A stretch of DNA of 64,000 nucleotides from Marsupella aquatica (lineage: Eukaryota; Plantae; Marchantiophyta). Positions 2,635 to 41,243 of this stretch are shown piece after piece. The translations under genes and the position numbers were made by a program. The stretch's first letter is position 1. Each line of letters starts with the position of its first letter. The notes below the pieces were generated by a model. It made no database searches, was not told the DNA's origin, and worked only from the letters and a program-made list of their open reading frames with translations. The stretch covers positions 6,001,079-6,065,078 of the forward strand of contig OZ316898.1 in assembly GCA_973895155.1 (NCBI GenBank). The letters run 5' to 3'.

Positions 2635-2789
2635 TATTTTCAAACCGGCTTTTGGTCAGTTGGCCAGGGGCTTAGCTAGAAGAGAAGGTCCTACGGTCAA
2701 TCCCCCCTCCACATGCAAGGGTCGTGGAGGGTATCTGTGGGAGGGGTCTAGTGGTGGGAGTTTTGGTTTGTCATCAACCCTGGCTCTTC

Positions 2790-2915
2790 TTCTTTGGGGC
2801 TCTGGTTCAACCCTCTCTCCCTGGTCTGGATCCCTGGGTATGACCCCCTTGTGGCTAACCTACAGAGGCATATGCTCTGGAGTGATCTTCTATCCTCTTG
2901 GATTTTTGGTTTCAA
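2790..2915. repeat. ~130-bp dispersed repeat, second copy at ~8650-8790
   Basis: CTTTGGGGCTCTG..CAACC...CCTGGGTATGACCC...GGCTA.CCTACAG...ATGCTCT.GAG is shared in direct orientation. Confidence 0.7.
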
Positions 2916-7937: not shown

Positions 7938-9995
7938 GTTTAAACTTCCAAGCTAACTAGTGTAAACTTTGAAAGAAATGGTGAGAAACTGGTAATGATA
8001 CTCTGTAGTGAGAGGCTTGGGCTAGGTTCAGAGTTAGATCCGGATTTGGAGACAAGTAGACTAGAGATGAGATAAATAAGGAAATGCAAAGTGAAAAGGA
8101 TCAAAGATTGAAATTGATCTAGACAAATAAATTTCAATGTTTGTGAAAGTGAAATAGATTCAGAATTAGGGGGAAGCAAGATGAACACTCATATGGAGAT
8201 CCAAATGACTTCACCTTCCAGGTTGTTTCACGAGCCCATATGCTTTGTTCACATAATCATGGTAAACATACGTGGTCACATAGGACTTGCACACCAAGAC
8301 ACACAATTGTAATACAACACTTAAAGTAGTTCCAGGGTGTCTCTCATTAGAATTAAGAACGTACAGCTCGAGAAAGGTGGGAGGACAAGGTCCCAAGCTA
8401 TTGTTTTGTTGAAACCTATTTGACTTTTGAATTTCTCTCATGTAATTGATTCATTGAGAGACGGACATCTATTGACAGAGGTGTTAATTGAAAGCAAAAC
8501 AAGATAGAAAGGTTAAGACGGCAATCAAAGTCTGGAGGGATTAATCGACATATGAAAACACCGCACCAACCACAAACAAATCCTTGCTTCCTGGGTGGTC
8601 TCTAATAATACCATGGTGCATGTCATAACATAAGGAACCCTAGAGGTCCACTTTGGGGCTCTGATCCAACCTTCTCCCTCCTGGTCCTGGGTATGACCCG
8701 CCTTGGGCTACCCTACAGTGGTGCATGCTCTAGAGTTGATCCTTTATCCTATGTTGGATGGATCAGCTTTGGTTGCTTTGGTTTTCAACGATATATAATA
8801 GGCGTGGCTGCAATCTTCTCCCAAACTAATTAAAAGCCATGATGGACCTCCGCTTTGTCTATGAAGCCCAGATGGACTGACAAAGCTTGGACTTGCTTAG
8901 AATATTTAAACTGACTGACTCAGATAAGATTATTTATATTTACCTAAACCGTGAGCTGGAAAGGATCTCCTTAGCGTTTGCAGCAGGTTTCAATTACACC
9001 AACTGGTAATGTAATTTTCTCGATAACTTGACAACTTCCATTTTGACTACATTCTCCCCGAGGTAGTCAAAGTTGTCAGCCATATGGGACCAGTCCATTT
9101 TTCTTTTTATCGTAAAAGCGAGAATCTCTTTACGCACTCCATGGGCCGTCCCGGCTTTGGTTTCTCTTTCTCCAACAAGCAGCTCTCCTATAACTAGAGT
9201 AGCATGGGCATGGGATAGCACATCTGAAAGGGTGTCACCGTTCTAGATACAGCCGACTGTTAGCGTGGCGCCCAAGTCTGAAGTCATCCCCGACACTGTA
9301 CGAGCTTGTCTGCCGACACGATCTGGCTAACGAAGATAACCATTCGTTTGCAGAATCACGCCAAATCAGGAAGTCAAATTTGTCTGGTCTAGGGAAGGGA
9401 TTTTTATGGCGCCGGGTCAGAATCGACCGACCTACACTAGAGACCAAAACTCACTTCACTTTTTGTCTGCCTGTTCACACCTTAGAATAAAGAATAGCTC
9501 CTCTCAGACATTATAAAAAGACAGAACTGTCGCCCAGTTGTTGCAAAGAGGGAATTGGAGCAATCGTTCTTGGATGGAATGAATGATCCTGCTGCTGATG
9601 CTGCTAGCGTGCGTTCTCTCTCCGGAAGACTCAGGAGCAATCGCGGGAGCACTCTTCGTACTTGCGATTGCGACTGCTGCTGCTGCATTCGGTTCTCACT
9701 TGTCGTTGGCAATCGGAAGAGCCTTTAAGCGCGAGGATTCTACTGAATTGAGCCACTTTTGAGATAAGCAACATGTTGCTCTCTGCTCAGCTCAGGTAAG
9801 AAACATCTGACTTCCGTTCTAACCGCAATTGAATTCCGCAAGAGTTATTAGTACCGCTGGAAAGGTTATGGCTGCCCTGTAGTAGTAGTAGAACAAAGCG
9901 GGGTCAGAGTTTTTTGAAAGGCGCTTAGGGTAACTTAGAGTTTAGGGTTTAGGGTAGTTTGAGTACTTATTATGCCGATGGGAATCAACAGGTTG

Positions 9996-13615: not shown

Positions 13616-14264
13616 TTCAACGTTGGAGGGGCTATTATTTCCCATAATGTTGGGTCAGGGCCTTAATAAACTTCAAAATCTAAGAGATTTTCAATATTAC
13701 TAATTTTAGTACCAGTAGAGGAGAATCATGGTAGTGGGTTGATCCAAACAATCAGGCAATCTTTCACATGAAAATTACAAAGCAAACAAATCAAAGAGGA
13801 CAAACTTCATTGATCCAAAAATTACCATACTTGATTATTTTCATTTTTCTTCCCAAAAATGACAGAGAAAAATCAGATCACGAAGCGGTTAAAAGTAGGA
13901 AAGCGGGTCCGACTGATTCTGGGATGGCCATGCAGGAATCAGAATCACTTTTGGGCAGGGGGCACTTACTTACGTCCTGGCCGCCGGAAGTCTTGGCCCT
14001 CAAATTCAACGATGATGATGAAGGGAGCGGGTATTTCCCGGACCGGCGCTCTTGTTTCCAAGTTTTCGAGGACTTGTCCAACAGTCGGCAAATGACCTTT
14101 TGCGCAACCTACGGTGGAAAGCTAGTCCCGAAGTCCCGTTTCCCACGTGTCCTATATTCGTATGATCTTGGGGCGAGTCTTGGGTACTTCCGCGCCCGGT
14201 TCATGTGCCGTGACCGGCAATCGGAGGTATCCTTTATCAATGGTATATTTATTAGCAAGGTTTA

Positions 14265-14828
14265 TCAGCGGCTTTTCACGAGGGGCATGGTTCACATGTA
14301 CAACTGAAGTGAGGTTTAAGGAATGGGAGGATATCAAAAACCCTAAATACCCCTTCATATGGAGAGTTTCTATAATTTAATTGGTAATGTCCGATCATGA
14401 TTCAGTCATGGTTGATATGAATGCACTCAGAAAAAACCAGGGCTATAAAGTAGTAAGACAATCACATTCATGAAAGGGAAACAACCCAAGAGTAAATAAT
14501 AACCAGGTCTGACTTACATTACAAAACCAGCCAATGAAATGTTAATAGGGGACCAGTATCTATCACTAACTGCAAATTGAATTTAGGTGAGAAGACAATG
14601 CTAAGTGTGGTGGGAAGATAATGTCCACAATGTCTTCCCAAACAGTGCATTCATACCAACCATGACTGAATCATGATAGGACATTACCAATTAAATTATA
14701 GATCGAAACTCTCCATATGAAGGGGTATTTAGGGTTTAGGGCATTTTTTTGATATCCTCCCATGATTCCTTAAACCTCACTTCGATCAGTTGTACATGTG
14801 AACCATGTGCCTCGTGAAAAGCCGCTGA
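14265..14828. repeat. Near-perfect inverted repeat: arms 14265-14427 and 14644-14828, loop ~216 bp
   Basis: TCAGCGGCTTTTCACGAGG...GAATGCACT is mirrored by AGTGCATTC...CCTCGTGAAAAGCCGCTGA; the differences are a few substitutions and short insertions in the right arm. Confidence 0.9.
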
Positions 14829-17351
14829 GAAGTCGTCACCGTTCGAGCGTGGACAAGAAAAACAGAATGGGAGGATATCAAAAAAATGCGGAATGATGTT
14901 TATAAAGCAAAGACATTCATGTCAATGTCTTCGAATGAGAATAACCCTAATGTCGATGTATAAGCGGCGCAAACATTCAACGCCTACAGTTCAGTTTGCA
15001 TCATGGGAACGGTTGCGGCTTGACAACGCTCGGTCACTGTGATTTTGAGCATGGTTCGTGGTTGAAATGGCTACAGTGACAAGTGACCCAATTTGGTCTT
15101 TGTAAGGCAAAAACTCACTCTATAATAACTTATAGAAGAACAAAGGGTACGGATCATAAAGAGGGGGTCGATTGGGGCAAAAATGTTTCCAGGGGGTTGA
15201 TCAAGCAAACTATCTCCAGGAGGGGGTCTATTGAGCATATCCCTCTCCAAACCATCCAAGGATTGTGAAGGCCAAATATCTTGTTAATCAAGTACTACTT
15301 ATTATGTCAGCACTTTACAACCAATGTACTGTAGATGTGTTTGATTGATGTCACAAATCCTAGTTCCAACCAACCCCATGTTGTATGCAAATTTCATTGT
15401 GAATAGGCAATACCACAAACAGGAATTCTGTGGATGAATTAAAAGTTTGTAGAAGCAGCTCAAGCTACAAAGAAACTGTACATCCAAAAGGCGGGCCTTC
15501 CTCCACCGCCATTACTAAAATGTCCCTTCAAGTCAAATAAATTTTTTTGACAAATAAACCTAAAAAGATGTCCCTTCTGTCGACCATCAGAGAGGGAATA
15601 TAATGTCACTTTTACTTCAAGGTGTTTGCGTGATGGATACTACTTTGGGTCAGCCCTCACTAAGCTACTGAGGGAATATACATAAGATTTTGAAAAATCT
15701 GGTGGCAGTGGTTTTATCCACCCCATTTCTAAGGTTCTCCAAATTAAAAATCAAAATTGAATCAAGAATATGAATTTATGGGACATCTGGTGAACTTTCA
15801 TAAAAAGTGGTCTATACATGTGAATCTTTTGTTACAAGAAAGGTTTATGGGAGTTCCATTTTCTCCCCTGGATGAACTGCTTTTATTTAAAAATTAGTTT
15901 AGATGTCCATTTGAAAAAGAAGAAACTACTATATCGTGAAACTGAAGCCTGGTCGGGGCCTGGATGGACCAAGACATTGTTCCTGCCCATCCCCATGGAT
16001 TGCCCCAAGTCATCAGCCAGTTTACACTGGAAAAAAAGGGACCTGTTGGTATTGATAGCTTTGGGAAGGATGTTTCACTGACATCAAATCCTCTGACTCC
16101 AACTAGTTTTCCAGGCACCTCAAGTGACCAACTACGAAGTGCTGGTTTTGGGCAAACTTGTCCACATATTTGGGACAAATTTTTGGATATTTGTGTAAGC
16201 TAAAATTCTGAGAACATGTCCTTTCATGTCCAATCTACTATCCTGCCAAAGTTGAGACTTTTTTGAGATTTTTGGCTCCATTTCTATGAATATGAAGATG
16301 GTCAAGTATTATAAATGAACTAAAAATGGACATTTCACTTTTGTGAAAAATGCAGAGTAGTTTGGATACAAGCAGCGATTCACCATCAAGCTCACTGTGG
16401 ATCTAACTGAAACAGGCTGCAAACTGTCAGGAGACCAATTTTGTTGTGTATGGGTCACATTTCAAATGAACTTTGAAAGGTGCTATCCAAATCTTATCAG
16501 ATGTTCTGCCCAAGTCCATCTGTGCAAATTGGCCAGTCCATCCCAACTTTATTTTCATTGTACACTAGTATAATCTACATGACTGAAACATTGTTAGTCA
16601 AGTACTGTAGTATAATCTTTGACATGTGGCAGTATTCTAAACTGAAGTTTGATCTTCCTTTTGTTGTCCTTTAATAGGTCTTTAAATTAGAATAGCACTA
16701 GGGATCACAAAACATACACTAAGTTAACCTGCTATAGAGTGCGCCCTACACTATTCACTGTAATTGGTCTTATCTAGCTTGGAATTAGTGTTTGTCCCTA
16801 ATTAATGTTGGTGATCCTAATATGCAAGTGGGGCAGGTTTGAATAGAAACCTTGAGGGCTTCACTTCCACAAATTGGCATATGATCATGTGGGATAAAGT
16901 ATAGGGTCATTTTATTGATTATAGGGGAAGACTTAATAAATCAATTTTCTTGGAAGAACATTAGAGTATTTTGAATCAATTTTTTTGAGTATTCCAAGAA
17001 TATTCCAACTTTATATTAAGGGCTAACACCCAAAAATTAAATCTTACATTTTAGGGGGGTTGAGGCCTAAAAATGTTAGAGGTGATGGGAAGGCCTCCAT
17101 ATAGGTGGACCCCTGAGATAGAAAATAACACTAAACATGGTGGGTATTTGGGCTAAGACTATTTAGGATTGGAATTCCCTAGCCTAGAGCAATTCACTTT
17201 GTCTAGTCCTACTCCTTATTTGTGCTGACATTGTTTCACATTCAAGTAATGTAGCCTTGCTGAAGCTTTGTTCCCTACAGTAGCTGTAACTGTTTTGGTT
17301 CTAGTGATCTTGTGTGCATGAAACACACTTTGTTCCCTTGCCGTCAAAGGA

Positions 17352-17815: not shown

Positions 17816-19208
17816 TGTATGGTAGTATATATAAAGACTAGTGGCACTCACATATTAGATTTGAAATACAATTAGAGACCTAACAAGCCTTCTTTTGTTG
17901 TGAGTCTCATCATTAAATTGATGTACAACTTAAAGGCTTGATAATCTCTAATAAGTATGTACATTTATATATACTTGCACCCATTTATTACATCTTTCCT
18001 ATATATGCCAAGGACTCCTGAAGTGTTTACATTCCTTAAGCTATATTCACATTTCACATGTTGGAGTATATATGGGGGCATGCAAGGTTGCCAAATAACA
18101 CTCTCGGGCATAGGTCTAGGGTTTAAGGTTTAGAATTTAGGTACTACATGCCTATATTTGCTCATGTCATTTTTTTCAATATATTATTCATGTTATTTGC
18201 ACAAAAATGTGGGGTGTCGAAGGCGGGCTTATCTTTGTCGCACCCGTCACCTAGACATGGAAAAAGTTCTTCAAGTGAAGGCGAGGATATAGACGATGAT
18301 GCAGGGATCCATGACAAGTCGGGGTCCAACGACGACTCCTCTTGCAGTCGGGGTGGGTTTCGCTGGGGCGTTGGTTCTAGCGATTCCAACGATGATTCGG
18401 ACGTGTACAAGCCAAGCTGGTGGGAAGATTAACTGATCAACTGATCCAAGAGATTAACGCATGGACCGTCTGATCCTGGAGAACCCAGTAGTCCTGAGTA
18501 GATTACCAACCTCATTTGGTGTAGTTCGATGTTGACAGCCATGACCAGTTGATGCAGTGATGGTAGAAATGGTAGTCAATCTTTTGCCAGCACGATAGTC
18601 TCGGAATCTATTGGGAGGTTACTCTTATGTTTTTACTCAATATTTCAGGACTTTGTGAAGTAAAGCCGATACCATTAAATGGAGTTTGAATCTATTAGTC
18701 ATTCCCTTATGCATTTTTCATTATTCAGTTTGTGTTTTTCGATGTTTTGCCTTACGAGAATGAGTAAATCTTTTCACCAAATGTCTTTTGAAAGTCTTCG
18801 TAATGATGTAGTGGTCTTACCCGTGACAGGTTCCATATTAGCGCTCGGCGCTAGCATTGGAATCCTCAAACTTATGCTTCTAACACCAGATGGATTCTTA
18901 AATATTTGTGGAGATGTAAGAGTTTGTATTACTCTCTCGTGATGAGTAACATCGATTTGGATGCGATTTATGATAGCGCCAAGCGCTAATAACGCTTACG
19001 GATAAAATGGTCCAAATAATGTCCATTTTGTCCATCTATCCATGAATTCCATTTGAATTTTGTAAAATATATATACGTGGGAGATTTGTTAGCGCTCGGC
19101 GCTATTGAAATGAGTAGTTTGAATCAGGTAATATGGAGTTGTTTTTGCTAGCGCTTGGCACTATCAATAAGGCCAAAACGATCAACGGTCATATTTTAAC
19201 GGTAACAC

Positions 19209-19279
19209 TGAGGATTGCTAGTCACGCGTAACCTTGAGGATTGCTGGTCACGCATAACCTTGAGGATTGCTGGTCACAT
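19209..19279. repeat. 26-bp tandem repeat x2.7 (TGAGGATTGCTGGTCACGCATAACCT)
   Basis: Units start at 19209, 19235 and 19261. Confidence 0.9.
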
Positions 19280-19559
19280 AAGACGGTTTCTGGTCCAATG
19301 GTAATCTTCCAAGTGTTCAGATCTGTTGGTGTTACCGTTGAGCAACACTCTAATGTGCTCAAGACTCCATGTCTTAACCTTTTGATTAGGCTTGGTGCTC
19401 GTTGGAGAGACATGATTCTCCTGGAGAAGCCTGTTCGAGCGTGACATTCTATACCTGAGTCTGTTACTTCGTACTGGATCAGGGGCTCTAGGAGAGTTGT
19501 ACGATACTGTCCAACGTTCTACTCAACGCCATCGCCATCTCTCAGTGGGTAATACGAGG

Positions 19560-22500
19560 ATGGGAGATAGTCATGCCGGTCATTCCGAGTCCTCACAGTC
19601 CTTTTTTTTCAGGTTCTGTGTACACCCGTCGCGTGACTCGGTCCGCTGCGTCTCATTCACATTCAGACATTGGCTCAACTCTTCCGACTGCGTGATCAAG
19701 AAGGGGGAGAATGGACACGAGTGAGGAAGTTGCTCAAGTTGATTTCGGTGTTGCTGGACTTTCAATGGACGATTACATTTCCAAGCATGTCTTGTCCTTT
19801 GGGAAAGATTTCAGAGGATTGGAGAAGGAGCCTCCACAAATTCCTCTATGTCGATTGATTCATATGGAAGTGGTGCGGACGTTGCAGAAGCAGAGCGCCT
19901 CCATCGATAAATTGAAGGAGTTGTTCCAGATTTCTGGATACAATTTGCGCATGGGCATGCCATTTTACGTACAGCCAACGAATGCGGATGGGGTTCCACA
20001 GATTTGCACTAATGAGATTAGAGCCTCTTGGGACCCAATCTGGGTTTCCAAGAATGACAAGTTCGAGGAAGAGTGTGACGCTGATCCTGATTTCAGAGTT
20101 TTGAAGGACAAGATGTTTTGTGTCTTTGATGGAAATCACCATTTGTATTCGTGGTCGATTGTGACAGTAGAGCATCCGAACAACATTAAGTACCACCCTC
20201 GTGTGACTTGCATTGTTTTCAATGGAGATAAAGGTTCCCTCGTAGAGCTCGAGGCTGCCATGCACGCTATCAACCAGTAAGCCAATCCTCAGGACAACCT
20301 CATTTAATATGACGTACTAGTTCAAGATGGATTTTGGATGTGATATTATCTTTGGTGTTTTACTAGCGCCCGACGCTGCTAATTTACATTTAAATTTTGG
20401 CATAGGTTGGGACAAGTTGTGGTCGAGCCATCTTGGATTCTTGATGCCGACAGAATCTCTCGTCTTTTATCCCGTGACCTAGAGCACTACAAACCCCTCA
20501 TTGATGCTACGAGTTATGCTAAGTTTGAAGCCATTCGAAAGAAGACTCGAAAGGGTTCTTGGTATACACACAAGATGCCACAAGACGCGCTCATCTACAT
20601 TTTGTGTGAGAACAAGATTAAATCTTACACAAACCAGTTCAAAGTGGACATGGATTTCGTAGCCTCCCAGGGGACTCCGTGGTCCGAAGAGGAGACGCAG
20701 AAGAGGCATGAAGCTATGATGAAGGAAGCGATAAAAGACTGGGCTATCAAAGTAACAAAGATAAACTCCATTGCTGCACCCTGATTTTGGTGACTACTTG
20801 GCTACATGTGCCAAAATGTTTCCCGTCACAGAGAAGAACAAAAGAGAAAAAAAGCCCGATATAGTTGTTTGTACTGTGGACCGTGCTCGTCTGTTTACTG
20901 CAGTTACTTATCTGGATCCGAAGTTAAGGTGTACCCTTCTTGTTGCCCATTGCACTCCGGAGATTCGGAAACAGTTCTTTCATCCGGCTAGTGTGAACGA
21001 CGATCCTGTAAAACAATGGTGCCATACCTGGCATATCTGGAATTCAGTGGAGGAAATTGCTACTGGATTGATCCTCACCTCGCTCGAGCAGGTTTTGGAT
21101 CGCATGCTAGATGATCGTCTTGTCAAGTCTGGTTGTGAGTCCCTGGATGTTCTCATGAAGTCCATTATCGAAGAATTCAAATCATTTGGAGACCTTGTCA
21201 AGGCTAAATTTTTCAACATAATGTGGCCATCAAAGTATGCAGACAAGGAGGACTACATTGAGCGGAACCGGAAACGAGCCAAGTGATACGTTTACCATTT
21301 CTACATGTGGATGGAGTTGCGATCTCCTGAGGTTTTGTGGGCTTACCCTGGTGCATTTCAAAAGTGGGTGATTATCAAAGATGGTGACCACCTTGTTGAT
21401 CTGTTTTCGATGTACCCAGCTGAGGGAAAGTTCCCACCTCGCGCCTTGTCAGAGTGGGAGAGACTCCACTGCCCATGGTATCTTGACACTGACAAATGGG
21501 ATCTGCCTTTCGACGAGGTGGAGAAAGACGCTTTCATGAAGTTACAGAAGTCGCAAATCCCAGCAAGGTACATATCGAAGATGAAGCAGGGTCTTGCAAT
21601 TGAAGTGGACGCTTCGACAACTGAACTGCAAAAGAAATGCGAGACAGTCATCGTGCATGTTGATCGGAGCCGAAAGCCAGGAGTGAAGGCCAAGAATGAA
21701 TCTGCAGCTCCCAGTGAATCAACTCGATCGCTTAAAAAATGTAAGTTTGCCTCTTAGGATTCAGTAAAGTATTCCCGCTCTTGTTTGTATGACATATTTT
21801 CCCCCAATTGATACTAGCACCGAGCGATATTATGAGAACTAGTTCCGTTGAGTAACGCCTCTCCGTCTTTCAGGGGGAAGGAAGTTGGATGCTACCGGTG
21901 ATGTAAAAGAGGACGCTACTCCTCAGGCCTCTGAAGCTAACACTGGTGCGGAAAATACACCAGATCAGGGAACCCCTGGGGAGAGTGGAAAGGCAGTGGT
22001 TCCAATGGACGCGACAAGTATGAAGAAGAAGAAAAAGAGAGGAACACTTGAGGATAGGCTCGGATCTTCATCCCGAGATTCAGTTGCGTCTACTGGATTG
22101 CAAAGAGATGTGGGGAATTTCAAACAAAAGTGTACTCGACATTGTTTTGTGGAGTCGAGTGTTACAGAATGTTTTGATTCCCTGTTTAACAAGGGAGAAA
22201 AGCTGGACTGGGTTTCTAATATTGAAGGTTGGGGGAAAGAGCTGGTGAAGTCTGGGGATCGAGCAAAAGGGGTTGTCCGAGAGGGAAAAGAAAGAGCTTT
22301 TGGAGTTGATGCTGGTTTCATATATCTTCTGACTGGGTTGAAACCAACACTTGTGGATAGGAAGGTTCCTAAATGGAACCTTCAAGATTATACGATTCCA
22401 AGTGCCTTTTTCAGAACAATGGATCCTTTCCTAGCAAATGATGGATTGCTAGCAATTTTGCACAGAGGCGACTATGACCAAGTTTCCGAGGTCATTGCAG

Positions 22501-23769
22501 CTTGTCAAGATTCACAAAAATTCCAGTGTATCTCGACACACAATGTTGTCATGGGCACTCCAATGTACAGGCCTCGCTCGGATATGCAGGTATGTATAGT
22601 AGCGCCTAGCGCTATTCCAAAGTTTATGTTTGGTGTCCTTCTTTGGAGATTGACGGCAACGCTAGCGCCAGGCACTAGTGTGGAATATCCTCTTCGTGAA
22701 ATGTTTCCGTATTCTCGACGTAGCATCTGATGTTTATTATGAACAAAACGTTATTCGATGTGCAGATTTTTACGCTCACTCTCAATGTTTTTGGGCGTGT
22801 TTCGTCCAAAGGTAGGGTCCCTAAGGATCCCAAATTTCGGCCTCTTTCACATATAGAGGATCCTTCAATAACCAATCTCATTGGTTTTCCCGTGCCAAAA
22901 AATGATCCTCTGCCGGAGCTTGCGTTTGCCGGGAATTCAAGGCTGCCTGTGGGTTTCATGCAGTCCGTTTTAGAATTAATTATTCTCCCTGGGGATATTG
23001 TCATGGACTGGACTGTTGGGGCCGGAAGTACATTTGTTGCTGGAGATCATTGTGGGAGGTTTGTAGTCGGGATTGAAAATCGTAAAGAGTTTCTCGACAC
23101 TGCCACAAAAGTTTTCTTTGGACTTCTCAAGAATAAAGAGGCCTCCACGTCCACGCCTCCGGACCGGCAGGTGGGGAGTAAGAAGTAGGATAGACTCCGT
23201 GTTGTTCTTAATTTTGATTCTGACGAGGACAATGATGGAGGCGATGGTACGCAACAGTCCAAAGATGATGGGGCCTCCAAGAAAGTGGTGAACCTTGGGT
23301 CTTCTGAATCTGAGGGTAGTGAAGAGTCTTCTGAGTAATGATCTTCAGCTTCCCTATCTTTTTTTTCTTTTTAAGTGTGACGTTAGTGTCTCCAAGATTC
23401 CACCATTTTCCCGGACCCGACTAAAGATATCGGATTCAACTTTCCAGGTTTGAGTGGAATCTTCGGAAGCGCTTTCAACTACGAAGGAAAGTCGCTAGGA
23501 ATGCAATAGAAACCCCGGAGAAGCCGTTTGTCTTGCCTTCTTATGCAGAAAAGGCGGCTCGAAAAGCAGATTCTGTGAGAATGTTGACTTGGGAAAGCAA
23601 AGGCCTGAGGCTAAAAAGGGGCTCTGATAGAAAGTTTATGAAGAATCGCTATGTCAATGACATCGTCCCGAGCAAGTATGTAGACGACGAAGCTGAGTCT
23701 ACTGATAGATCACAAAGTAGTGAAGAAGAATTAGAACTAGATTCGACTGATTCAGAATCTGATGGCTAG
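19560..23769 (+). pseudogene. ParB/Srx-like domain + N6-adenine/N4-cytosine DNA methyltransferase-fold fusion gene; 4 exons, disrupted
   Basis: Introns 20277-20405, 21741-21873 and 22590-22765 are GT-AG and join the listed ORFs. Exon 1 has a ParB/Srx-like core (IPLCRL..VRTL..LKELF..GY...FCVFDGNHHLYSW). Exon 4 has RLPVGFMQSVLELIILPGDIVMDWTVGAGSTFVAGDHCGRFVVGIENRKEF, matching the C-terminal block of beta-class amino-MTases (KP..L...I...PGD.VLDPF.GSGTT..A....GR..IGIE). Stops at 19693, 21284 and 23186; frameshifts at ~19605 and ~20770; acidic tail to 23769. Confidence 0.75.
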
Positions 23770-25221
23770 CCAAACTTTAAAACTATATTTTGGGGATATA
23801 GATATTGGCTATTTTACAAAATAGCGCTTGGCGCTATTGTGAACACATGTAATATTGATGGGTGTTTATAAAGTGAGACGGACTGTCCACATTGTTTTTT
23901 GACTAAACTTTCCTCTGTGAAGCGGACAATCTTAACTTGGGATGTATTACAATTGGGTGATAATTAGAATACGACTTCCCCCTTTCCCAATGTTTCATCA
24001 ATTGGCATCTGATGGTCTTTAGTTGATCTATGTTTTTAAGTTTGTTATTGAGGTCTGTATACTAGCGTCGGGCGCTAGTATACATATGTTTTTGGGGATA
24101 CTTTTGCATATAGATGTTTTGAATGAGGTTTTGGGTATTTTGGACTATTTCAGGACTGTAGCGTTGGGCGCTAGTATCACGATGTGTTTCAAAATGATGG
24201 ATTTTAGAGGGTTCGATCTCATTTTCCGAGAGATGTCGGATTAGGGAAGATTTTTTTGGTGCAGACATTTGCTGCTATGAGCTTTACTGTTTGCTGTTTG
24301 TTGTTTGCTGTTTGCTGTCACCGTGAAAAGCCTCTCTCTCTTGTCTCATTAATTTTCGTCTGAACCAAACGGCAAATCATGTCTGAGGTCTGCTCTACTC
24401 TTCAAAGTCCGTTAATTTTAGAAGCATTATACTTCTTCCCTTCTGGTTATACTGCATTCTTTCATGTGATTTCCTGTCAGCAATGTGTGATTGTTGTGTG
24501 GTGGTTGTGCAGGGTTTATGGGCGTCTTGATTTGATTGAGCTCTCTACAGATTGTCTTCAAACCTTTCACCCTGAAGGTATTCCTGTCTGGCCTTATAGT
24601 TTTTGCAACAAGCCTGTAATTATTAATTCTGCTAAGGCCTTAGGTGCGTATTTGAGAATTGGAGCTGCTTCGAACACTTCAACTAATGATCTCCTGAACA
24701 GGATACCCATTAAAATTCATACAATCATGTCAAACCTAGAATTCAGTTGTACAGTATATTTACTTCTCCTGAAGTAATTTGATAGGGTGTGTCTCTCAGG
24801 GTTTGTATGTTTATTGATTGAGAGCTATGTACGGACGGTTGTGATTTGTTTGTTAAAGCGGAAGGTTTGGAGGTGATGATCAAAATGTTTTCAGATGTAT
24901 GTTCTGTTCTGGTCAAAGTGAAACAGAGGGTGCGTTGTTTTGTCAGCTGGGATGTTAGAGAAAACTTAATAGCTGGTGTAGGCCTGCAGGCTGGTTTGGC
25001 CAGACTGAGAATAAATATTGGGGCAATTGGGGAATAAATATTGGGGAGACTGATGAGTGTGGTAACCGCAGGTCTGTGCTGGTTGGAGGTGCGACTGGGG
25101 CTGGCTCAACTGCTCTGTGAGTAAGTACACTTCACTTACCTTCTTTGTGTTTGTCTCTTGGTTTTTGAATGGACTTTGGAGTGATGTTGAAGGCAATTGT
25201 GCAGATTTTATTTTCTTCAGC

Positions 25222-25920
25222 ATGGCACGGGCTGCTGCTGCCTGGTTGGATCCCAAGTTTGCCCATAAGGAGCACCTTCGCATGGATCCCCCCTGTTGTT
25301 TTGAATGTGATGAGGGAGGTACTGTTTTGTTCTGCGATGGGCCTTGTAGTCGACATTTTCATTACTTAGTTGATGGGCAGGATGCTGAGGAGCCTGATGG
25401 CCATGGGCCTGAGTGCACATGCATTGCCATTTCTAGAGGGCATGATTGGGACAAGGAGTGGCTCTGTGACCTCTGTCAGCAGAACCGAGCTTGTTGCTTT
25501 GCTTGTGGGTTACTTGGCCGAACCGTGAAACCCACTATAGATGAGCCCCTTGTGATTCAGTGTGCACAGGATGATTGCTATTCCTTTTATCACATGGGTT
25601 GTTTGCGGACTATATTGAGGGCGAGGGAGTTAGCTCTGATAACTTATGCAGAGAACTCAGATGCACATCCCGCTACTCTGATATGCCCAAGGCATTATTG
25701 TGATGTGTGCAAGGAGTATCGGGATGGCATCTGGGAATTTATCCAGTGTCGTAGGTGCCCTCGTGCGTGGTGCAGAGATGAAGGACCAAAGGCAGACAAA
25801 CACCTGAAGAGAGGGATTAAGGGTAGAGAAACTTGGGATTGTGGTCCATGGCGTATGGTGTACTGCAATCGCCATGTCATTCCAGAGGGTTCTGATGTGC
25901 CACCTCATGATTTCAAATAG
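25222..25920 (+). CDS. Stand-alone EDM2-like composite PHD-finger protein (232 aa)
   Basis: ATG follows a splice acceptor (ttttcttcag). CFECDEGG.VLFCDGPCSRHFH / CFACGLLG / VIQC...C.SFYH.GC / CPRHYCDVC / QCRRCPRAW / TWD...RMVYCNRH.I follows the order and spacing of the EDM2 PHD region as recalled. Reading frame uninterrupted. Confidence 0.85.
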   Translation: MARAAAAWLDPKFAHKEHLRMDPPCCFECDEGGTVLFCDGPCSRHFHYLVDGQDAEEPDGHGPECTCIAISRGHDWDKEWLCDLCQQNRACCFACGLLGRTVKPTIDEPLVIQCAQDDCYSFYHMGCLRTILRARELALITYAENSDAHPATLICPRHYCDVCKEYRDGIWEFIQCRRCPRAWCRDEGPKADKHLKRGIKGRETWDCGPWRMVYCNRHVIPEGSDVPPHDFK

Positions 25921-27763: not shown

Positions 27764-28860
27764 AACTCGGTATTCGTTCCCGTAAAGAACAAGATGGGGT
27801 TGGTTTGATAGATTTAAACAATAATAAAGAACTAAAGATGTTTTCCACACATAGTAATCAAGTTTGATTACTTTAATAAGGTACTTTGAAGATCGCTCCA
27901 CAACGGTGAGTGGTTTTTAATGACAACTCAGCATCATGTAACCATAAATTAATGAAAAGGAAATGATTAATAAAACACAAGGGAAATAATCTCAAAGTAC
28001 GCTAGGGGAGTCTGGAATTGACCAAGGTTGCTCCTTAGGCATAAGTCAAAATGAAAAGACTTAAGGATTCAAATCCATATTGCTTTTTAGGTCTAAAATG
28101 TTTACTAGAGTACCTTTTAAAATGCCGTAAACATGTCTTATCCTTTCTTTCTAAGTGGTACTCAGATAAGATCTAAAAGGTAGCTACTTCAACATTTAGA
28201 TGGTACTAAGCAACATGAAAGAAAATCCATCAATTTCAAATAAGACTTAAACTCAATGAGTTAACTTTAAGAACTCAGGAGATTGCAATGAGTCACCAAA
28301 GAGGAATCTATCATCACAAGATCCAAAGATTTCTTACAAATGGATTTTATTTCCTGTGTTTATAATCAGAGGTAAAAACACAAGAAGGAGGTAAGTCTCT
28401 CCAAATGTTAAACCTAATCTCGAACTCATAGATTCATGATCAATGGGTTTAACACAAGGTAGAGGCAAAAATGCAAAACTTAACCATACTTCTACACTAG
28501 TGGTGGAGGGGTCTTATAGTAAAAACCTATAGGGTAAGAGGTCATAGGGTCGAAGAGACATGCCTCTTCATACTCCTCAAAAAGTCAAAACAGCGATTCA
28601 GTAAGTGAAAAGCCGGGAAATGGCTAAGTAAGAACCCGTAAAAGCATAAAAGCGTAAAGACATAATCGCGTAAAAGCGTAAAAACGTAAAGGCGTAATCT
28701 GGTGAATGCGGTAGACTTAAAGACTTACCAAATTCAACTATTTTTAACTTCCTAACTATAAGTCAGAAAACTCTGAGATTTTGCCGGGAGGTTTTCCTAG
28801 GTACAGACTACACACTAAATAAGTTTCATAGCTTTTAAAGCTCTATAACACATTTTGAAA
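27764..28860. repeat. Diverged long direct repeat, copy 1 (copy 2 at ~32064-33450)
   Basis: Colinear anchors AAACTCGGTATTCGTTCCC, GGGAGTCTGGAAT.GACCAAGGT, AAATGCCGT.AACAT.TCTTA.CCTTTC, GGAATCTATC, GACATGCC, CGTAA array, TTTTTAACTTCCTA.CTATAAGTC. Confidence 0.75.
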
Positions 28861-28915: not shown

Positions 28916-31350
28916 TCAAGCTTGTTGTCGGATGTCTTCTGGTTCGAGTAGCTCCACGAGGGTAACAGTCCGAGCTTGAGTAACTTCCATCAGCTCAGCC
29001 TGGCGTGGGGATCCTCGAGAGTAGGGTAGGCATCTCAATTGCCTTTCAGGATACATCAGGGGCATTCTTCTCCTTAGATAACATATGTCTATTCGAAGAG
29101 CTTCTCTATATATCCCAATCACGTCATAATTATTGCAAGTAGCAGCATATACTTGGGGATAATGGTATAGAAATTCATCAGAGTTCAGCATCCTGGAATA
29201 GAAAGGGTGAAGCCTCCATTTGACATCTCTGAAATACCGGTTGAAGTTGGCTAGAGTTTGAGAGGTGACATTGTTCCAGATTCTCTGTTTCTCAGCTAAT
29301 GAACTGGTTGAAACAAGGGTAACCTTGGGCTCTCGAGGAAGATAAGCGTTCTGGGGAGAAGTAGATTTCTTACTCTGCATGAGAAAAGAAACCACAAAAT
29401 CTAGGGCATAAGCTGCCAAATTTCCAAAATATGCCAGAACTAAATCTGAATCCTCCACCTCCACCTCCACATCTCCTTGAAGTAGCATCACAGCAAGAAT
29501 GGGTCGGAAATAGAGAGAGTCAGTCCAGAACTCATCGAATTGTGCCATCTCCAGTCTGGAAGTTCCAAAACACCTGAGGTCGAAGATATAACTGGCCTCT
29601 GTCTTCTTGAGATAGTAGTATTTCCAAAATTCTCCAACCGGTGATCTGTTGGCCTGCATAATCTTACAGGTCTCCACATACCTGTGCACTTGGGACTCTG
29701 GATGTCTCGGGTATCTACTCTCGATGGTGGCATTCCGAGGTGTTTGAGTAGATGAAGTGACAACTGCTACTAAGTTTGGATTGGATCTTAAGGCAGTATC
29801 AACATCTTCAAATCCCTGCCTTGGGGATGACTCAAGAGAATTATCATAAGATCTATAAGTTTCACCATCTGAGGATGGATCAGAGTCTTCAGGTAGATCT
29901 TCTCTGTCAAAAGGGTGCTCATATTGTGACCGATTGTAGGTGGGTCCTTCTGTGGGTTCGTAGTTGGAATCAGGGCTGTAAGGTTGCAAACCTGGGCTAG
30001 GAGTAGGACTAGCAGTTGGACATTGTTGGATCAAGTTGCGGACCACAGATGCTATCTGTCGAGGTTCACACTGTAGTAGTTCTAACAAGTCATCCACAAT
30101 GGCCACACAGCTGATACTATTTGTTACTGGAATAGGCTCACTTGTTTCTAGGGGAGGGGGCTGTACAGTGACAGGAGTACAGATCACAAACTCCATTGGT
30201 GCTGGTTCTCTTGGGGGAGAGGTTATTCTGACAGGGCTTAGCTGATCATGAAATGGTGATCCCAAACTAACAGCCTCCATTCTCAAATTATTAACAGCAT
30301 CATATAGTCCATCATCACTACAACTGAGGAGAGATATCAACTTATCAATAAGCTGCTGATTCGACTCTGCCTTCGAAGGAGTGGACCTGGTGGTCTCATG
30401 AGGAGTAGCATCAGTTGGTGTAGCAACATCGTCTTGTTGATGAATGCTCCTTACTTCTTCAGCTTCTAGTGGATCTGCATCCATAGTCCGGCTAGGGAAA
30501 TTCTCATTACTTATTGATTGGCGAACAACTTCCCTGCTATGCATAGGAGAATGTGTAGGGATTTCTAATGAAGTATCCTCCATAGGAACATCAGCATTCT
30601 CCTCAACGTTCTGATCATTTGAATTCAATGGGGTGACATGTACAATGTCCTCCATAGGAATTTCTTCTTCAATACCCAAGTCAATCAGGAGTAACCCCTC
30701 TCTGTCTCTTCCTCCAGATATAAACAGTCATGAGTATAATAGAGCTGAGAGAGATAATTCTGTAAACAAGTGGTCCTCCCTGCTTCCAAGCTCCTTACTT
30801 GATCCTTCATTACATTAAACAGAAGTAGGGCCCAATTTACTTTTATAGCTCCACTGTGAGCAGCTACAATGGTGTTAGCCAAGGCCACAGGACAGAGAGT
30901 TGGCTTTTTCGGATGAAGAATGGGTACCAGAAATTCCATGAGCACTCTCAATTCAAGATAAGTACACTGGGACAAGTTCCAACCATTCTTGGCATTTCGA
31001 GTTCCTGAGAAGTATGGAGCAGATAAGTCCTGCTTCTTGGAACATAACGCCTCTCCTTCTGACGGGCATCCAAAGGCGTAAGCAATTTGCTCAACAGTCC
31101 ACAGGCTGGGGTGAGCTCAAATCGTTTGCCTGAATTCAATCGAGATGATAGTCCCCTTCACAAAATCCTGCAAGTAGGAGTCGAGCTCGACATTCCAGGG
31201 GATCCTGAGCAAGCGCTCCAATCCTAAGTGTTGTAAAGAGTCTTGTAAATTAGAAAGACTATCAGGCGCTCATGGTATACGAGCTGCCACTACTTTTGAG
31301 ACTGCTAGAGCTTCAATTTGATACTGTTCCTCAGCACCCAGGTTTGCCAT
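28916..31350 (-). pseudogene. Frameshifted mobile-element-associated ORF: conserved-looking N-terminal domain, Pro/Ser-rich linker, globular C-terminal domain
   Basis: ATG at 31350 (MANLGAEEQ..), stop at 31270, frameshifts near ~31150 and ~30695, then a 587-aa open segment. NGWNLSQC...LMEFLVPILHPKKPT...LANTIVAA.SG..KVNW..L...V resembles repeat-associated hypothetical proteins of bryophytes (recalled, unverified). Confidence 0.6.
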
Positions 31351-32063
31351 AGCTGCAACGGTGATTTGCGTGCTGCGAAGGTTGCTTTCGAAGAGAAAGA
31401 GCAAGTGAATAGGGGTGGTGAAAATACAGGAGTGAGCGCCTGAACTCTGTGCTTGATTCCTATCAAGGTATGAAGTCCCCAATCCGTTTCTAAGTCCCGT
31501 TGCGAAGTTAGCCGTAGCGCCATAACGTGAACTTTCCTTAAACACATAAGGCGTAAGCCGTAATCCCGTATTGGCGTAAACTTGTAACAGCGTAAACCCG
31601 TAAACCCGTTACGCTCTTACGCGTAAATGCGTAATCCCGTTATAAAGTATACCCGTAGTTTACACTTGGCATTTTAACAGCAACAGCAGGCTTAAATACT
31701 GTAAAAAGTTTAAATTTTTCAGTAATTTCAGGTTTTCGGTATTACCCAATACTCACATAGCCCTCTCCTCAAACGGCGCCGTGCCCTCACAAGCCTTCAG
31801 AATGAGGTAAATAATATTTCTTGACCCTGAAACTGTTGATTCTTGTTGCAAGGGGTTCTCCATTTAAAGTTGAAGTGTGTCCAAATAAACATTATCTCAT
31901 TGATTCTTAATTTGCAGCAATCCATTGAGTGAGAAGTTTTCCCTGAAAGAACATATACTTGGAGTCTTACATCAAAAGTGAATTTGCCTTTTGAGATATT
32001 CATTGGTTTCAAAAATTGTATGTAGTATTACATTAAGGACATAAATCAACATTTAATGCCCAA

Positions 32064-33450
32064 AACTCGGTATTCGTTCCCATGGAAGAACATGTTGGGA
32101 ATGGTTTTCTATCAATTAACACTTATGAATGACTAAGGTGTCGAAAACACAAAGGTGAGCCTTTTACTATGGATGCTCAGCAAGGCATAGATTTAAATGT
32201 TTGCTTAACATTATAAATACGATTAACAAAATGGAATAAATTAACAAAACACAAGAAAATCTTGAGGTATGATGAGGGAGTCTGGAATAGACCAAGGTAA
32301 CTCCTCAACAACACTTAATTTGTGATGATTTAAGGTGAAAAATCCGCAAGAACATTTCTGGAATGAAATACTTTACTAGGATGATTATTAAAATGCCGTC
32401 AACATATCTTAACCTTTCCTTCCAAGGTACTCAGTTAGGATTAATAACCAATCACTTCAGCATCCAGTCGGTACTCCGAGTCACGAATAATGAACACCAT
32501 CATCGTCAAACTAAAGTCATAGGTAATTGGTCAATAACATTCTTTACACCCTGTGCAAAAGCAATGTCATGCCAAAAACTTATGCATCAAGAACTTAGAA
32601 ATGTATAGCCTTCACCAATTAAGGAATCTATCTCCATACATTCAAAAGATTTCACCATTTCACAAGGTTTTACTTCTCTGGTTTGATCTCCAACATTCAA
32701 ACACAAGGAAGGGGGAAGAATTCCTTTGTATTAATCACTCATGCAAATACAGAGTTTCTCTCTACAAAGTGAAGCCTTGTCATGCTGCAAATTTGCAACA
32801 TAGTGCTTACATAATTCTTTCACATTTCAAATGACATAAATTCTACTTTATATAGGCTGGTAGAAACCCAAGGAGAGAGAAAATGAAAGGACATGCCCTT
32901 TCATGCCTCAAGGGTTCTTGAACTAAAGTAAAAATAACAAAGGTGTGCTACAGTAGTACCTAAGGGTCACATGAGGGTTCCTAGTATATAAAACTAACCA
33001 AAAGGTATTGCAAATGTGAACTAATGTAAAAGTGACATTAAGGTAAAACTAATGAATAGTGGCTTTGTCCTAATTTTAGTTTCTAAACCAAATATCAGTT
33101 TGAGATGAAACGTTCCCAGAGTATTCTCTTAGGTATAGTCTTCATGCTGGTAAAATCTCAGACTTTTCTGAGGTGTTTAGGTACTTCAATAAAATACCAA
33201 AAAGTACCGGAAATAAAGAACTACAGAAAATCGGAAAAAATTCCAAGTGTTGAAGGTATAAACGCGTATACACGTAAAAGCGTAAACTCGTAAAGACGTA
33301 ATCGCGGTGCAGCAAAAACTTAGCAGATCCAAACATTTTTAACTTCCTAGCTATAAGTCGGCTTGAGCTGAAACTTTCAGGGATGATTCTACTCCGTAAT
33401 GACTACCTCCTGAAAAAGTATGAAACTTTTCTGACCATGAGAACTATTTA
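32064..33450. repeat. Diverged long direct repeat, copy 2
   Basis: Same ordered anchors as 27764-28860. Confidence 0.75.
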
Positions 33451-34002: not shown

Positions 34003-37000
34003 ATGGCTTCTAGCCAGGCTGGGTCACATAACACTGCACATACAATAGAGGCAGACAACCTGAGAAGTTTACCTCTTTCCCATCCACGTCGAATACAGCG
34101 TCGTGATGATAACTTATGGGCTCGGGAACAGACAGCTTGCGCTCTGGTAGTGCTGATCATAGAATGTATTGCTCTTGCATGAAATGCAAAGGGATTGTTA
34201 AGACTACTCGAAAGACCAGTCGACAACATCTTCTTAAATATGGCCGCTACCCTGCCTGTCGAGTGTGGGTTGAAGACTCTTCTGATGAGGAGTGGAGATC
34301 CAATTACATCCGTAACTCTGGTCCAGAGGCACTAAGGGCAGGAATGTCTCGAGAGGCATTCCACTCAGGCATGCCATCAATAGATGTTGAAGAGCAGGTC
34401 AGAGTTTTACTTCAGGAGACATTGGCAAGAGCTTCTGAAGAGTCTGACGAATATGTGGATAATGATCCTCTTTTGATATAGATTCAATGTTTCAAAATGA
34501 TGAGAATGAGGCAGATCCATCCTCTACTGAGACCAGGGCTGAGGACACACCTACAGCAGGGCATCCTATAAATCCTGTCCCTCTGCAAGGGTCTTTAGAA
34601 GAAGCCATGAAACCCTTATTTCCAGGCAGTAAGACAGATGTAGTTTCCTTCATGTTGTTGTTTTTAAACATCTGTCACAACAATAGGGTTCTTGAACATG
34701 GGAGTGAATGCCATGTTGTCTTTGTTGACTGAGCATGGAATGCCAACAGAGCACACTCTCCCTAAAAACCTATATGCTGCAAAACAATTACTGAGAAAAT
34801 TGGGTTTAGACTATGAGAGAATCCCAGTCTGTGAGAATGGATGTATGTTATTTAGAAATGAGATTGCAGAGTTGGAAAATTGTTCCAAGTGTAATCAGCC
34901 AAAGATGAAGTTAGTGGGGAATTCTTTACAGCCTGTGAAGGTCTTGAGATATTTCCCTATAATCCCTCGATTGAAGAGATTGTATGCCACTAAGGGTACA
35001 TCTAAGCTAATGACTTGGCATCATGAGAACAAGAGCAAGGACAACATGGTCCAACATCCAGCAGATTCAAAGGCATGGAAGCATGTGGACACAAAGATCG
35101 ACCCTACTTTTGCTGCTGAGCCAAGGAATGTGCGAATGGGATTGGCACTTGATGGGGTAAATCCATTTGGGAATAATTCTACTGCCTGGTCTACATGGCC
35201 AATCCTGCTGTTGAATTATAATATCCCTCCTTGGCTTTCCACAAAGAAGTTCTTTGTCATGCTGGCTCTTCTAATTCCAGGTCCTATGTCTGTAAGCGAG
35301 GAACAATTTGATGTATACATGGCTCCACTTGTGGATGATCTTGAGACATTATGGTCATAAGGAGTAGATTGTTTTGATGTTCTACCAAGGCTAGGATTGT
35401 AGCAACAGTTCAAGCTAAGGGATTCAGTATTGTGGACAATCAATGATTATCCTGCATATGGATTAGTCTCTGGCCAACAACATGCAGGGTACAAAGGATG
35501 TGTGGTTTGTGGGCCAAATTGTGTGGCACATGGTTCAAAACAGTTGGGCAAGTTACTGTTTGCTGGCCATCGTTGCTGGTTACCACAGAAGCACTATTTT
35601 CGCAAAGAGGAAGTGGCAAAATACTTTAATGGTGAGGTAGAGGCACGAGCTGCACCATGTAGAGTGTCCAGCTCTGATAGGAAACGTTGGGAAGAAAAGG
35701 CCGCTAAATATGTGGAGAAGAAACCAGGGAATGCGCTGGATGATGAGAACTCTCCAGTAAAGAAGAATGGAGTGAAGAGGGTTACTGGATTATACAAGCT
35801 GCCGTACTGGAGTGTAAGTATCTGATTTCCCATACTGAATCCCTCAGTGTGTATTAATGTTAAGTAGCAAAGAGTAACATTTCTTATTCTAACTTAGTTT
35901 GTACTGAACTGTGCGTCCAATGCAGAAACTTCTCATCAACCATTGTTTGGATCCCATGCATTGTGAGAAGAATCTTGCACACAACATTGTGCACACTATT
36001 TTGGGGACAAAGGACACTCCTTCTGTTCGAGAAGACATGAAAGTCATGGACGTGCGGGAACACCTGTGGCTGGTTCCAAATCCAGATCCAAAAAAAGATT
36101 CAAAGATCATGCCGCCAGCCCCATACTGCCTCAGTAAGACAGAGAAGACTAAGTTCTTAGAGGTATTGTTGACCTTTAAAGGGCCCACTGGTTTCAGCAG
36201 TTCTTTGGCTAAATGTGTCACAGTTAAGAAGAAGTTATCAGGGCTGAAATCTCACGATTTCCATCACCTCATGCAACAAATCCTTCCATTGGCAACAATG
36301 GGATTACTTGATGAAGGTGTTCGGTTGGCCATAGCCAGAGTGAGCAATGTGTGGTGTACCAGCTGTGCCAAGGTTTGGGATCCCTCACAATACGACTCTG
36401 TGATGATGGATGTTGCATTCACACTCTGCCTTATGGAAATTCATTTCCCACCAAGCTTCTTTGATGTTATGACCCATCTATTTGATTCATCTGGTTCAGG
36501 AACTAGATATTTGTGGTCCAGTGAACATTAGATGGATGTACCCAATAGAAAGATATCTAAAGACCTTGAAGGGTTATGTTTGAAACAAGGCACGTCCAGA
36601 GGCTTCTATGACTGAAGGCTACCTTCTGGATGAATCTTTAGGATTCCTTTCTGAATACATTCAGATCGATGTTAAGGGGACAGGAATGAGAACATGGGAC
36701 TTGGAGAAGAATCCTGGTGTTGCAGGCATTGTCTTGGAAGGAGCTGGAAAACAGATCACCTTGGAGTGGAATGATATGATAGCTATGCATCATTACATAC
36801 TGGAGAATGAAGAGCTGGTGGAACCATGGTATAGGTATGAGCATGGTTTATATTGTTAAGTTCTCTGTTGTTTATTATTAAACAGAATTGAGTTTTGAGC
36901 AGAAATTGTGTGGGCCTAGGAGCTGACTATCATTCTTGCCATGCAGGGTTTATGATGATCAAAAGGAGGCAGTTACCAAGCACAGCTCTAGCAGATTTCC

Positions 37001-41133: not shown

Positions 41134-41243
41134 GATGCGCAAAGTGATGTCTTTGTTTAGGGTTTTAAGTGGATTCATTGTATGTGATTTTGAATGTAAC
41201 TATGAGCTCTTCTTAGATACATCCCAAATGACATTACTTAGAA

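Follow-up and report, generated by a model that had tools for sequence, protein, structure and literature searches.

A decayed accessory gene of a CACTA-type transposon in the liverwort Marsupella aquatica joins a predicted ParB/Srx domain to a methyltransferase-like fold and is paired with lineage-specific palindromes

Introduction

What does a gene that couples a ParB/Srx-like domain to a prokaryote-type amino-methyltransferase fold do inside a plant transposon? The question is raised by a 64,000-nucleotide stretch of the Marsupella aquatica genome (assembly GCA_973895155.1, contig OZ316898.1, positions 6,001,079 to 6,065,078 of the forward strand; hereafter the window, in whose coordinates all positions are given), where such a gene occupies positions 19711-23769 of the + strand. 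A first-pass annotation, made from the letters of the DNA and their open reading frames, had described the locus as a fusion with three introns lying within a plant transposon, and had proposed either an element-encoded writer of N4-methylcytosine (4mC) or N6-methyladenine (6mA) that marks self DNA, or a catalytically dead DNA-binding derivative. The answer that we favour, with moderate confidence, is that this is a decayed accessory gene of a ~25.8-kb CACTA transposon, whose intact protein recognises its own palindromes and carries a methylase fold of a non-canonical kind.

A single spliced gene, degraded in the window copy

Reading the three forward frames together with the junction DNA resolved the gene into five exons separated by four GT-AG introns (Table 1)—one intron more than originally counted. 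The exons sum to 3508 nt, or about 1,169 codons, a total of the form 3n+1 that fits one single frameshift. In fact, the frame changes within exon 2 at around 20765-20784, where tblastn alignments of Riccia homologs continue unbroken. Two premature stop codons were found as well: a TGA at 21284-21286, which replaces the conserved Arg of a KRAKR motif in relatives (again from tblastn with the Riccia homologs), and a TAG at 23186-23188, where the frame of the 57%-identical relative P0169 continues. Because it carries one frameshift and two premature stops, in addition to a change of the conserved DGNHR motif to DGNHH, the window copy is a pseudogene; these lesions and altered key residues leave it unable to make the protein. 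This state of the gene had been missed by the first-pass annotation. A short open reading frame at 19573-19695 (+), in the frame of exon 1, is cut off solely by a TGA at 19693-19695, and one Riccia homolog aligns from 19516, upstream of the exon 1 start. The original N-terminus may have been longer, in which case this TGA would be a further stop.

Intact versions of the gene were found in Riccia sorocarpa. Each of the proteins P0154 (KAL3677308.1, 1207 aa) and P0160 (1244 aa) is a single polypeptide that comprises the DGNHR motif, the middle region, the linker, a loop resembling motif IV, and motif I, and KAL3686416.1 is another intact homolog. Full-length Riccia proteins span 1,191-1,244 aa; the proposed fusion in one spliced gene is thereby borne out. 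The position of intron 1 is common to the window gene and its Riccia counterparts, and the exon phases are consistent. Moreover, query residue 188 is exactly where most database relatives of exon 1, being single-exon fragments, come to an end, and this points to a conserved intron site. At the other end of the protein, the tail LPSYAEKAA...YVDDEAE recurs in the related locus L001 and in Riccia P0026. Throughout the searches, the window exons were queried individually, whereas whole domains were represented by natural homologs. A word-index search with exon 4 recovered a single relative (the 57%-identical one), the same search with exon 3 returned nothing, and the C-terminus of Riccia P0154 retrieved Riccia paralogs only.

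These results bear on the possibility that the two halves are separate genes, juxtaposed by chance or captured as host fragments, with the fusion being an artefact of how the open reading frames were read. The many database entries that consist of single-exon fragments would suit such an explanation. However, several annotated Riccia proteins show the same order of ParB domain, middle region, linker and methylase. All exons are connected by canonical splice sites whose phases agree, a single frameshift explains the length modulo 3, and the linker reads open on either side of intron 2; we therefore regard separate genes as very improbable. A ParB/Srx domain followed by a beta-class amino-methyltransferase fold, encoded by one spliced gene within a plant DNA transposon, is supported.

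The N-terminal domain is predicted to adopt a ParB/Srx fold

The first domain of the protein left almost no trace in sequence comparisons. Exon 1 had no significant match in Pfam, NCBIfam, PADLOC or the PDB (by phmmer or with the family profile), and none below E 0.18 in PHROGs; likewise, the N-terminal family profile and 55 members showed no match to ParBc (PF02195) or its clan, the only entry being DndB, at E 0.066 in 3 members. HMMER, run in full over 1.84 billion representatives, recovered 233 relatives of exon 1 (79 below 1e-10), and the named relatives from this large search are all hypothetical proteins of Riccia sorocarpa or the fern Adiantum.

Since the sequence profiles gave no significant match, the assignment to ParB/Srx rests on predicted structure. 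The AlphaFold2 model of exon 1, built with 55 relatives aligned, reached a predicted local distance difference test (pLDDT) score of 92.4 and a predicted template modelling score of 0.86. Comparison with VIA-align gave Z ≥ 2 for only 13 of 48161 PDB representative chains, the top matches being KorB (Z 7.6), PadC (7.2), Arabidopsis Srx (6.4) and Pnob8 ParB-N (6.0), alongside human sulfiredoxin, Atu1540, SerK, SbnI, Spo0J, SspE, BrxU and Osa. The outlier was O-phosphoserine sulfhydrylase at rank 12 (Z 2.2); the other 12 of the 13 chains we take to be members of the ParB/Srx superfamily. Foldseek rows 1 to ~44 were, in turn, nearly all ParB, Noc, KorB, PadC, Srx, SbnI or SerK, with E-values of 0.1 or more. 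The near-exclusive membership of one superfamily in both match lists supports a ParB/Srx fold for the modelled domain, and the original proposal stands in this structural sense; at the level of sequence profiles it found no confirmation.

A Gly-x-x-Arg type phosphate-binding motif characterizes these proteins, appearing as GERR in ParB, GCHR in Srx and DGxHR in many others. In the present family, the consensus DGNHR is found in 89 of the 106 matches that carry a DG.H. motif, and it sits at the junction between strand 136-140 and helix 142-154 of the model. The window copy reads GAT GGA AAT CAC CAT at 20128-20142, i.e., DGNHH as first annotated, with the Arg lost at the CAT codon (20140-20142); given the consensus, a CGT-to-CAT transition at a CpG is a fair reading of this change.

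In the ESM Atlas, the N-terminal domain lay nearest to fungal DUF3723 clusters (score 0.96). Starship elements of fungi carry DUF3723 as an accessory gene. No Pfam match to DUF3723 was seen among the 55 members, and no paper linking DUF3723 with ParB was found; the proximity is a lead towards a possible distant fungal-plant link between ParB-like domains of transposon accessory proteins, for which the hidden Markov models (HMMs) gave no support. The middle region (~445 residues) had no match in Pfam, NCBIfam or PHROGs, and the ESM Atlas was uninformative there (0.75).

A constrained methyltransferase-like fold with a non-canonical motif IV

In contrast to exon 1, which no sequence profile recognised, the C-terminal part of the protein can be placed by profile comparison. 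The exon 4 piece matched PF01555 (N6_N4_Mtase) with E 5.1e-7 and 30.3 bits (cut-off 26.7) over profile positions 165-220 of 221, covering the C-terminal, S-adenosylmethionine (SAM)-binding end of the fold: PGDIVMDWTVGAGST (22988-23032) and GRFVVGIE (23054-23077). Exon 4 also matched the beta-class PDB enzymes DpnA/M1.HpyAVI and CcrM, as well as DNA methyltransferase families in NCBIfam and PHROGs and a Type II methyltransferase in PADLOC (E 4.6e-9), which confirms the SAM-binding motif of beta-class enzymes noticed at the outset. Riccia homologs scored 23.7-26.2 bits against PF01555, slightly under the cut-off. A family profile built from Riccia paralogs and the window exons aligned over 165 positions with DpnA/M1.HpyAVI (sequence E 1.9e-4, stretch E 2.3e-4) and over ~200 with CcrM.

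Structure prediction is consistent with this profile evidence. An AlphaFold2 model of the 273-residue Riccia fragment P0155 (17 sequences) was matched by Foldseek to CcrM (8.5e-7), M.BceJIV, M1.HpyAVI, RsrI and MboIIA as the leading entries, with ~240 columns aligned to CcrM, M.BceJIV, RsrI and MboIIA; the low confidence of the model (pLDDT 50.5) limits the weight of these matches. The motifs stand in permuted order, exon 3 holding the motif IV position (22305-22343) and exon 4 holding motif I (22988-23032), in agreement with the order of strands and helices in the P0155 model. Motif I and the motif II acid read DWTVGAGST/GIE in the window, DFAGGWGAT/VAE in Riccia and DWTVGVGNT/GVE in P0169, the conserved form of motif I being D-x-[FW]-x-G-x-G-x-T.

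Motif IV, by comparison, departs from every canonical form. At its position the window carries VDAGFIYLLTGLK (22305-22343), which reads IYLLTG (I-Y-L-L) and aligns with ADCLYLD[LM]P[ST]GLK of the intact Riccia homologs. As the corresponding loop, 13 Riccia paralogs have LD[LM]P[ST]G, whereas the closer relative L001 has ISFPNG, and a (D/N/S)PP(Y/F/W/H) motif occurs in no member aligned (the window gene, the 13 Riccia paralogs and L001). The earlier remark that DPPY or SPPY is not recognisable in the window thus extends to intact members, where D[LM]P[ST]G or SFPNG is found instead.

To what extent is this domain maintained? The Riccia paralogs P0154 and P0157 (dS ~0.6) gave a ratio of non-synonymous to synonymous divergence (dN/dS) of 0.16 over 215 methylase-like codons and of 0.24 overall, as Nei-Gojobori estimates on predicted gene models; other pairs were unusable, P0154 and P0156 being too close (dS 0.03) and P0154 and P0160 saturated; for P0156 and P0157, the division into domains is invalid, its ranges being numbered after P0154. 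With a dN/dS of 0.16, the methylase-like domain appears, from this comparison of gene models, to be under purifying selection and constrained rather than decaying.

The same data invite another explanation, namely that intact members are catalytically active in spite of their unusual motif IV and, targeted or loaded by the ParB domain, place 6mA or 4mC on their own palindromes or on nearby DNA. In its favour, selection on the domain is purifying, and conservation extends to motif I, to the acidic residue of motif II and to the motif IV loop (D[LM]P[ST]G among the 13 Riccia paralogs; S-F-P-N-G in L001, whose Ser in first position recalls the SPPY of N4C enzymes). In addition, the palindromes described below are short and GC-rich, resembling Type II sites, and the authors of an Ectocarpus survey propose a comparable activity for algal proteins. 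In amino-methyltransferases, the first Pro and the aromatic residue of (D/N/S)PP(Y/F/W) hold the target amino group in place and provide stacking against the flipped base. These two residues, however, are present in no member examined, the HMM alignments to methylases begin only past motif IV, and an analogous change to EPPL in METTL14 goes with loss of catalysis. On balance, we consider active methylation a tentative explanation, less probable than a methylase fold that has become non-canonical. Between the two initial proposals, a dead or non-canonical DNA-binding derivative fits better with the missing DPPY, the retained motif I and the purifying selection; the writer fits less well.

Lineage-specific palindromes surround the gene

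Palindromes of the form TAGCGC-N3-GCGCTA are strongly concentrated at the locus. Nine copies with at most one mismatch occur in the whole window, where 0.00 are expected, and eleven with at most two mismatches, all within 18839-24173, against 0.44 expected. Of the 11 copies, four lie upstream of the gene and three downstream, while introns 1 and 2 hold one each and intron 3 holds two (Table 1); the window scan found none in exons and none elsewhere in the element. Mismatches fall mostly at CpG positions.

Related genes carry palindromes of other sequence at equivalent places. In Riccia, the gene flanks hold CCAGCGG-N3-CCGCTGG and CGGCGA-N3-TCGCCG at one locus (L002) and GGCGGA-N-TCCGCC at another (L003), in arrays of 18, 9 and 18 sites against ≤0.05 expected, and L001 has two GTCAAGCTAACGG-NN-CCGTTAGCTTGAC copies, intronic and upstream of exon 3. 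Because the Riccia genes and L001 thus carry different palindromes around the same gene, the pairing of the gene with lineage-specific palindromes is reproducible. Around the P0154 gene of L002, the palindrome families lie at 8510-9369 and 14353-15163, one of them confined to the upstream side and the other chiefly downstream; further copies occur at 2630-4270. The two families could represent two binding specificities or a neighbouring element.

The distribution of the palindromes also weighs on a further alternative, in which the ParB/Srx domain would be a nuclease or nucleoside triphosphatase (NTPase) that aids transposition, for example by nicking the palindromes or bringing them into synapsis. 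With the methylase fold as a DNA clamp, the product would then be a second transposition protein and not an epigenetic or regulatory factor. Nuclease or NTPase proteins of the DGxHR type (Atu1540, Osa, SspE, BrxU, SbnI, SerK) are indeed among the VIA-align matches, and CACTA elements require a second DNA-binding protein besides the transposase, as exemplified by TnpA of En/Spm. Nevertheless, the palindromes cluster at the gene and not subterminally, where such a cofactor would act, and we consider a helper of transposition unlikely.

The gene resides in a large CACTA-type element

The window is plant-like DNA, with an intact open reading frame for a leucine-rich repeat receptor kinase at 51463-54738. 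Inverted-repeat arms were found at 16949-17117 and 42401-42555 and, by local alignment of the element's ends, extend outward to GGGCTTCACTTCCAC and GGGGTTTCACTTCCAC, respectively, with a possible 3-bp target-site duplication (TSD), TGA, immediately outside both ends. Between them lie remnants of a CACTA/EnSpm-type transposase, including a Transposase_21 gene (Table 1). Since the inverted ends bound an element that encloses the gene, its location inside a plant transposon, as first proposed, is supported; the element is a CACTA-type transposon of ~25.8 kb, with ends at ~16.86 and 42.68 kb and possible nested insertions.

Table 1. Coordinates of the gene, its palindrome clusters and the enclosing element in the window
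Feature	Position	Strand	Remarks
Left terminal inverted repeat region	16856-17117		Similarity starts at GGGCTTCACTTCCAC
Upstream cluster, four palindromes	18839-19163		Starts at 18839, 18974, 19090 and 19149
Exon 1	19711-20276	+	ParB/Srx-fold domain; DGNHH at 20128-20142
Intron 1	20277-20405	+	GTAAGC...TAG; degenerate palindrome at 20364-20378; position conserved in Riccia
Exon 2	20406-21740	+	Family-specific middle region, ~445 residues; frameshift and TGA inside
Intron 2	21741-21873	+	GTAAGT...CAG; degenerate palindrome at 21815-21829
Exon 3	21874-22589	+	Acidic/Lys-rich linker, then first half of the methyltransferase-like fold; BLASTP match to Riccia P0026, tblastn match to L001
Intron 3	22590-22765	+	GTATGT...CAG; palindromes at 22600 and 22663
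Exon 4	22766-23334	+	SAM-binding half of the methyltransferase fold and acidic tail; TAG at 23186-23188
Intron 4	23335-23447	+	GTAATG...CAG; inferred
Exon 5	23448-23769	+	Conserved C-terminal tail LPSYAEKAA...YVDDEAE; matches L001 1815-1952 and the Riccia P0026 C-terminus
Downstream cluster, three palindromes	23822-24173		Starts at 23822, 24063 and 24159
CACTA/EnSpm-type transposase remnants	34692-37707	+	Transposase_21, DUF4218 and DUF4216; same element
Right terminal inverted repeat region	42401-42683		Ends at GGGGTTTCACTTCCAC, ~42683

Several other features were noted in and around the element. Within the element and on the same strand, 1.35 kb downstream of the ParB-methylase-like gene, an open 267-aa reading frame (25117-25920, +) encodes NSD-type PHD fingers (PF22908, E 1.5e-9) and may, from its domain content, be a further accessory gene of the chromatin-reading kind. 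An open 587-aa frame on the opposite strand (28916-30679, -), for which Pfam gave no match, is flanked on both sides by arrays of a short 8-bp unit (CGTAAANN); these arrays lie at 28623-28715, 31553-31613 and 33243-33311, one of them also upstream of the transposase, and may be another candidate set of binding sites in the element. Near the right end, a 12-bp tandem repeat of ~27 units (41228-41555) has one frame that reads a repetitive MTPS/MTPC peptide. Outside the CACTA element, a compact structure of ~570 bp (14262-14831), composed of nested inverted repeats of 36-59 nt with 93-97% match, looks like a miniature inverted-repeat transposable element or a hairpin element. The ratio of observed to expected CpG is 0.46 for the whole element (16862-42676), 0.74 for the gene region (19560-23769) and ~0.6 in the flanks.

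Discussion

Drawing these observations together, an intact gene of this kind would yield a protein of ~1,170 residues, consisting of a ParB/Srx domain with DGNHR, a middle region of ~445 residues, a charged linker, a methyltransferase fold and a conserved tail. The fold would keep motif I and the motif II acid, with [DS]-x-P-x-G in place of DPPY, and would act as a SAM-binding or DNA-gripping module and not as a standard 4mC/6mA enzyme. We infer that the protein could bind the palindromes as a dimer, in the manner of ParB and parS, and that such binding may serve the recognition or regulation of its own element—whether by autoregulation, self-marking or protection from silencing.

A number of points weigh against this interpretation. 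Palindromes surround the gene but are absent from the element ends, and their placement does not imply that the element as a whole is recognised. The Foldseek E-values for ParB are weak (≥0.1), a VIA-align Z of 7.6 is middling by the scale of the tool, and the confidence of the methyltransferase model is low (pLDDT 50.5). The middle region has no recognised fold in Pfam or the ESM Atlas, and no DNA-binding part could be assigned there. With respect to the carrier, the TSD is only 3 bp long and could be chance, and a search out to 10 kb from the two Riccia genes examined yielded no transposase. Finally, a fold that combines a conserved [DS]xPxG loop with an intact motif I might yet catalyse a reaction on some substrate.

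Among known systems, the closest parallel is an accessory protein of 1104 aa, ParB-like with a DNA methyltransferase, carried by a Sola1 element and reported in a 2025 survey of Ectocarpus transposons (PMC12477816). Both are accessory genes of large cut-and-paste transposons, encode proteins of ~1,100-1,200 residues, and place a ParB-like N-terminus before an amino-methyltransferase of the N4C/N6A type; the role proposed for the algal protein is likewise to bind and modify its own element. The window gene differs in its host, a land plant with relatives in Riccia and Adiantum, in its carrier, CACTA instead of Sola1, and in the conserved [DS]xPxG that its family has in place of the canonical catalytic motif, the algal protein being compared by its description. 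The window gene is therefore a land-plant variant of the algal transposon ParB-methyltransferase kind; in the literature, no paper on a land-plant version was found.

A second parallel is offered by the Plavaka accessory genes of Bostrychia moritziana, where PAG3 combines a ParB N-terminal domain with a 2-oxoglutarate oxygenase, PAG2 combines an N6A methylase with a SET domain, and inverted-repeat arrays stand beside the ParB-type gene, for which the authors suggest self-binding (10.1101/2025.02.11.637652). Giant Plavaka/EnSpm-type transposons with accessory genes, a ParB-type domain and inverted repeats adjoining the gene are thus common to both cases. In Bostrychia, however, ParB is fused to the oxygenase and the methylase is separate, whereas the window gene unites ParB and the methylase fold in one polypeptide; in place of arrays, its repeats are palindromes dispersed through the promoter, the introns and the 3' flank.

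As for origins, eukaryotic methylase clades that derive from phage ParB-terminase loci have been listed (Iyer et al., PMC4738411). Proteins of phages and prophages that combine ParBc with N6_N4_Mtase share with the window gene the domain order and a similar motif I, and PHROG DNA methyltransferase families match it. Unlike these proteins, the window gene has the ~445-residue middle region, a charged linker and introns; it is devoid of DPPY and has no sequence match to the Pfam ParBc profile. Descent from phage ParB-methyltransferase fusions is plausible on the basis of these comparisons.

The first-pass annotation had also pointed to domesticated N4C methyltransferases of bacterial derivation, a link that proved weak. 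MpDN4MT1a/b of Marchantia and N4CMT of bdelloids are proven 4mC writers that keep TSPPY, MpDN4MT1 having no extra domains and N4CMT carrying a chromodomain. They resemble the window gene in being bacterial-type beta-class N6_N4_Mtase folds in eukaryotes, one of them a liverwort. However, neither is transposon-borne or fused to ParB, and the window gene has no TSPPY-type motif. From their domains and motifs, we rejected a close kinship with either; MpDN4MT1 is not a close relative because it keeps TSPPY and lacks extra domains.

A more far-reaching proposal, which we advance as speculative, is that a private "ParB-parS" pair travels with plant DNA transposons of several superfamilies as an anti-silencing or self-recognition module. 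Here, a nucleotide-dependent ParB-type protein would load at element-specific palindromes near its own gene and spread along the element, and the SAM-binding pseudo-methylase would read or block host DNA methylation. Palindrome specificity would diversify between lineages, much as in the incompatibility groups of plasmid partition systems.

The struggle of transposons with host silencing would gain a further layer from transposon-encoded proteins that identify their own element and bear on DNA modification. Algal counterparts were mentioned only in passing in 2025; new here are the presence of the family in land plants (liverworts and ferns), a methylase-like domain that appears conserved under selection without the canonical catalytic motif, and the pairing of the gene with a different palindrome in each lineage examined. 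The window copy is dead, and the intact homologs in Riccia sorocarpa make the function of the family open to binding and methylation assays.

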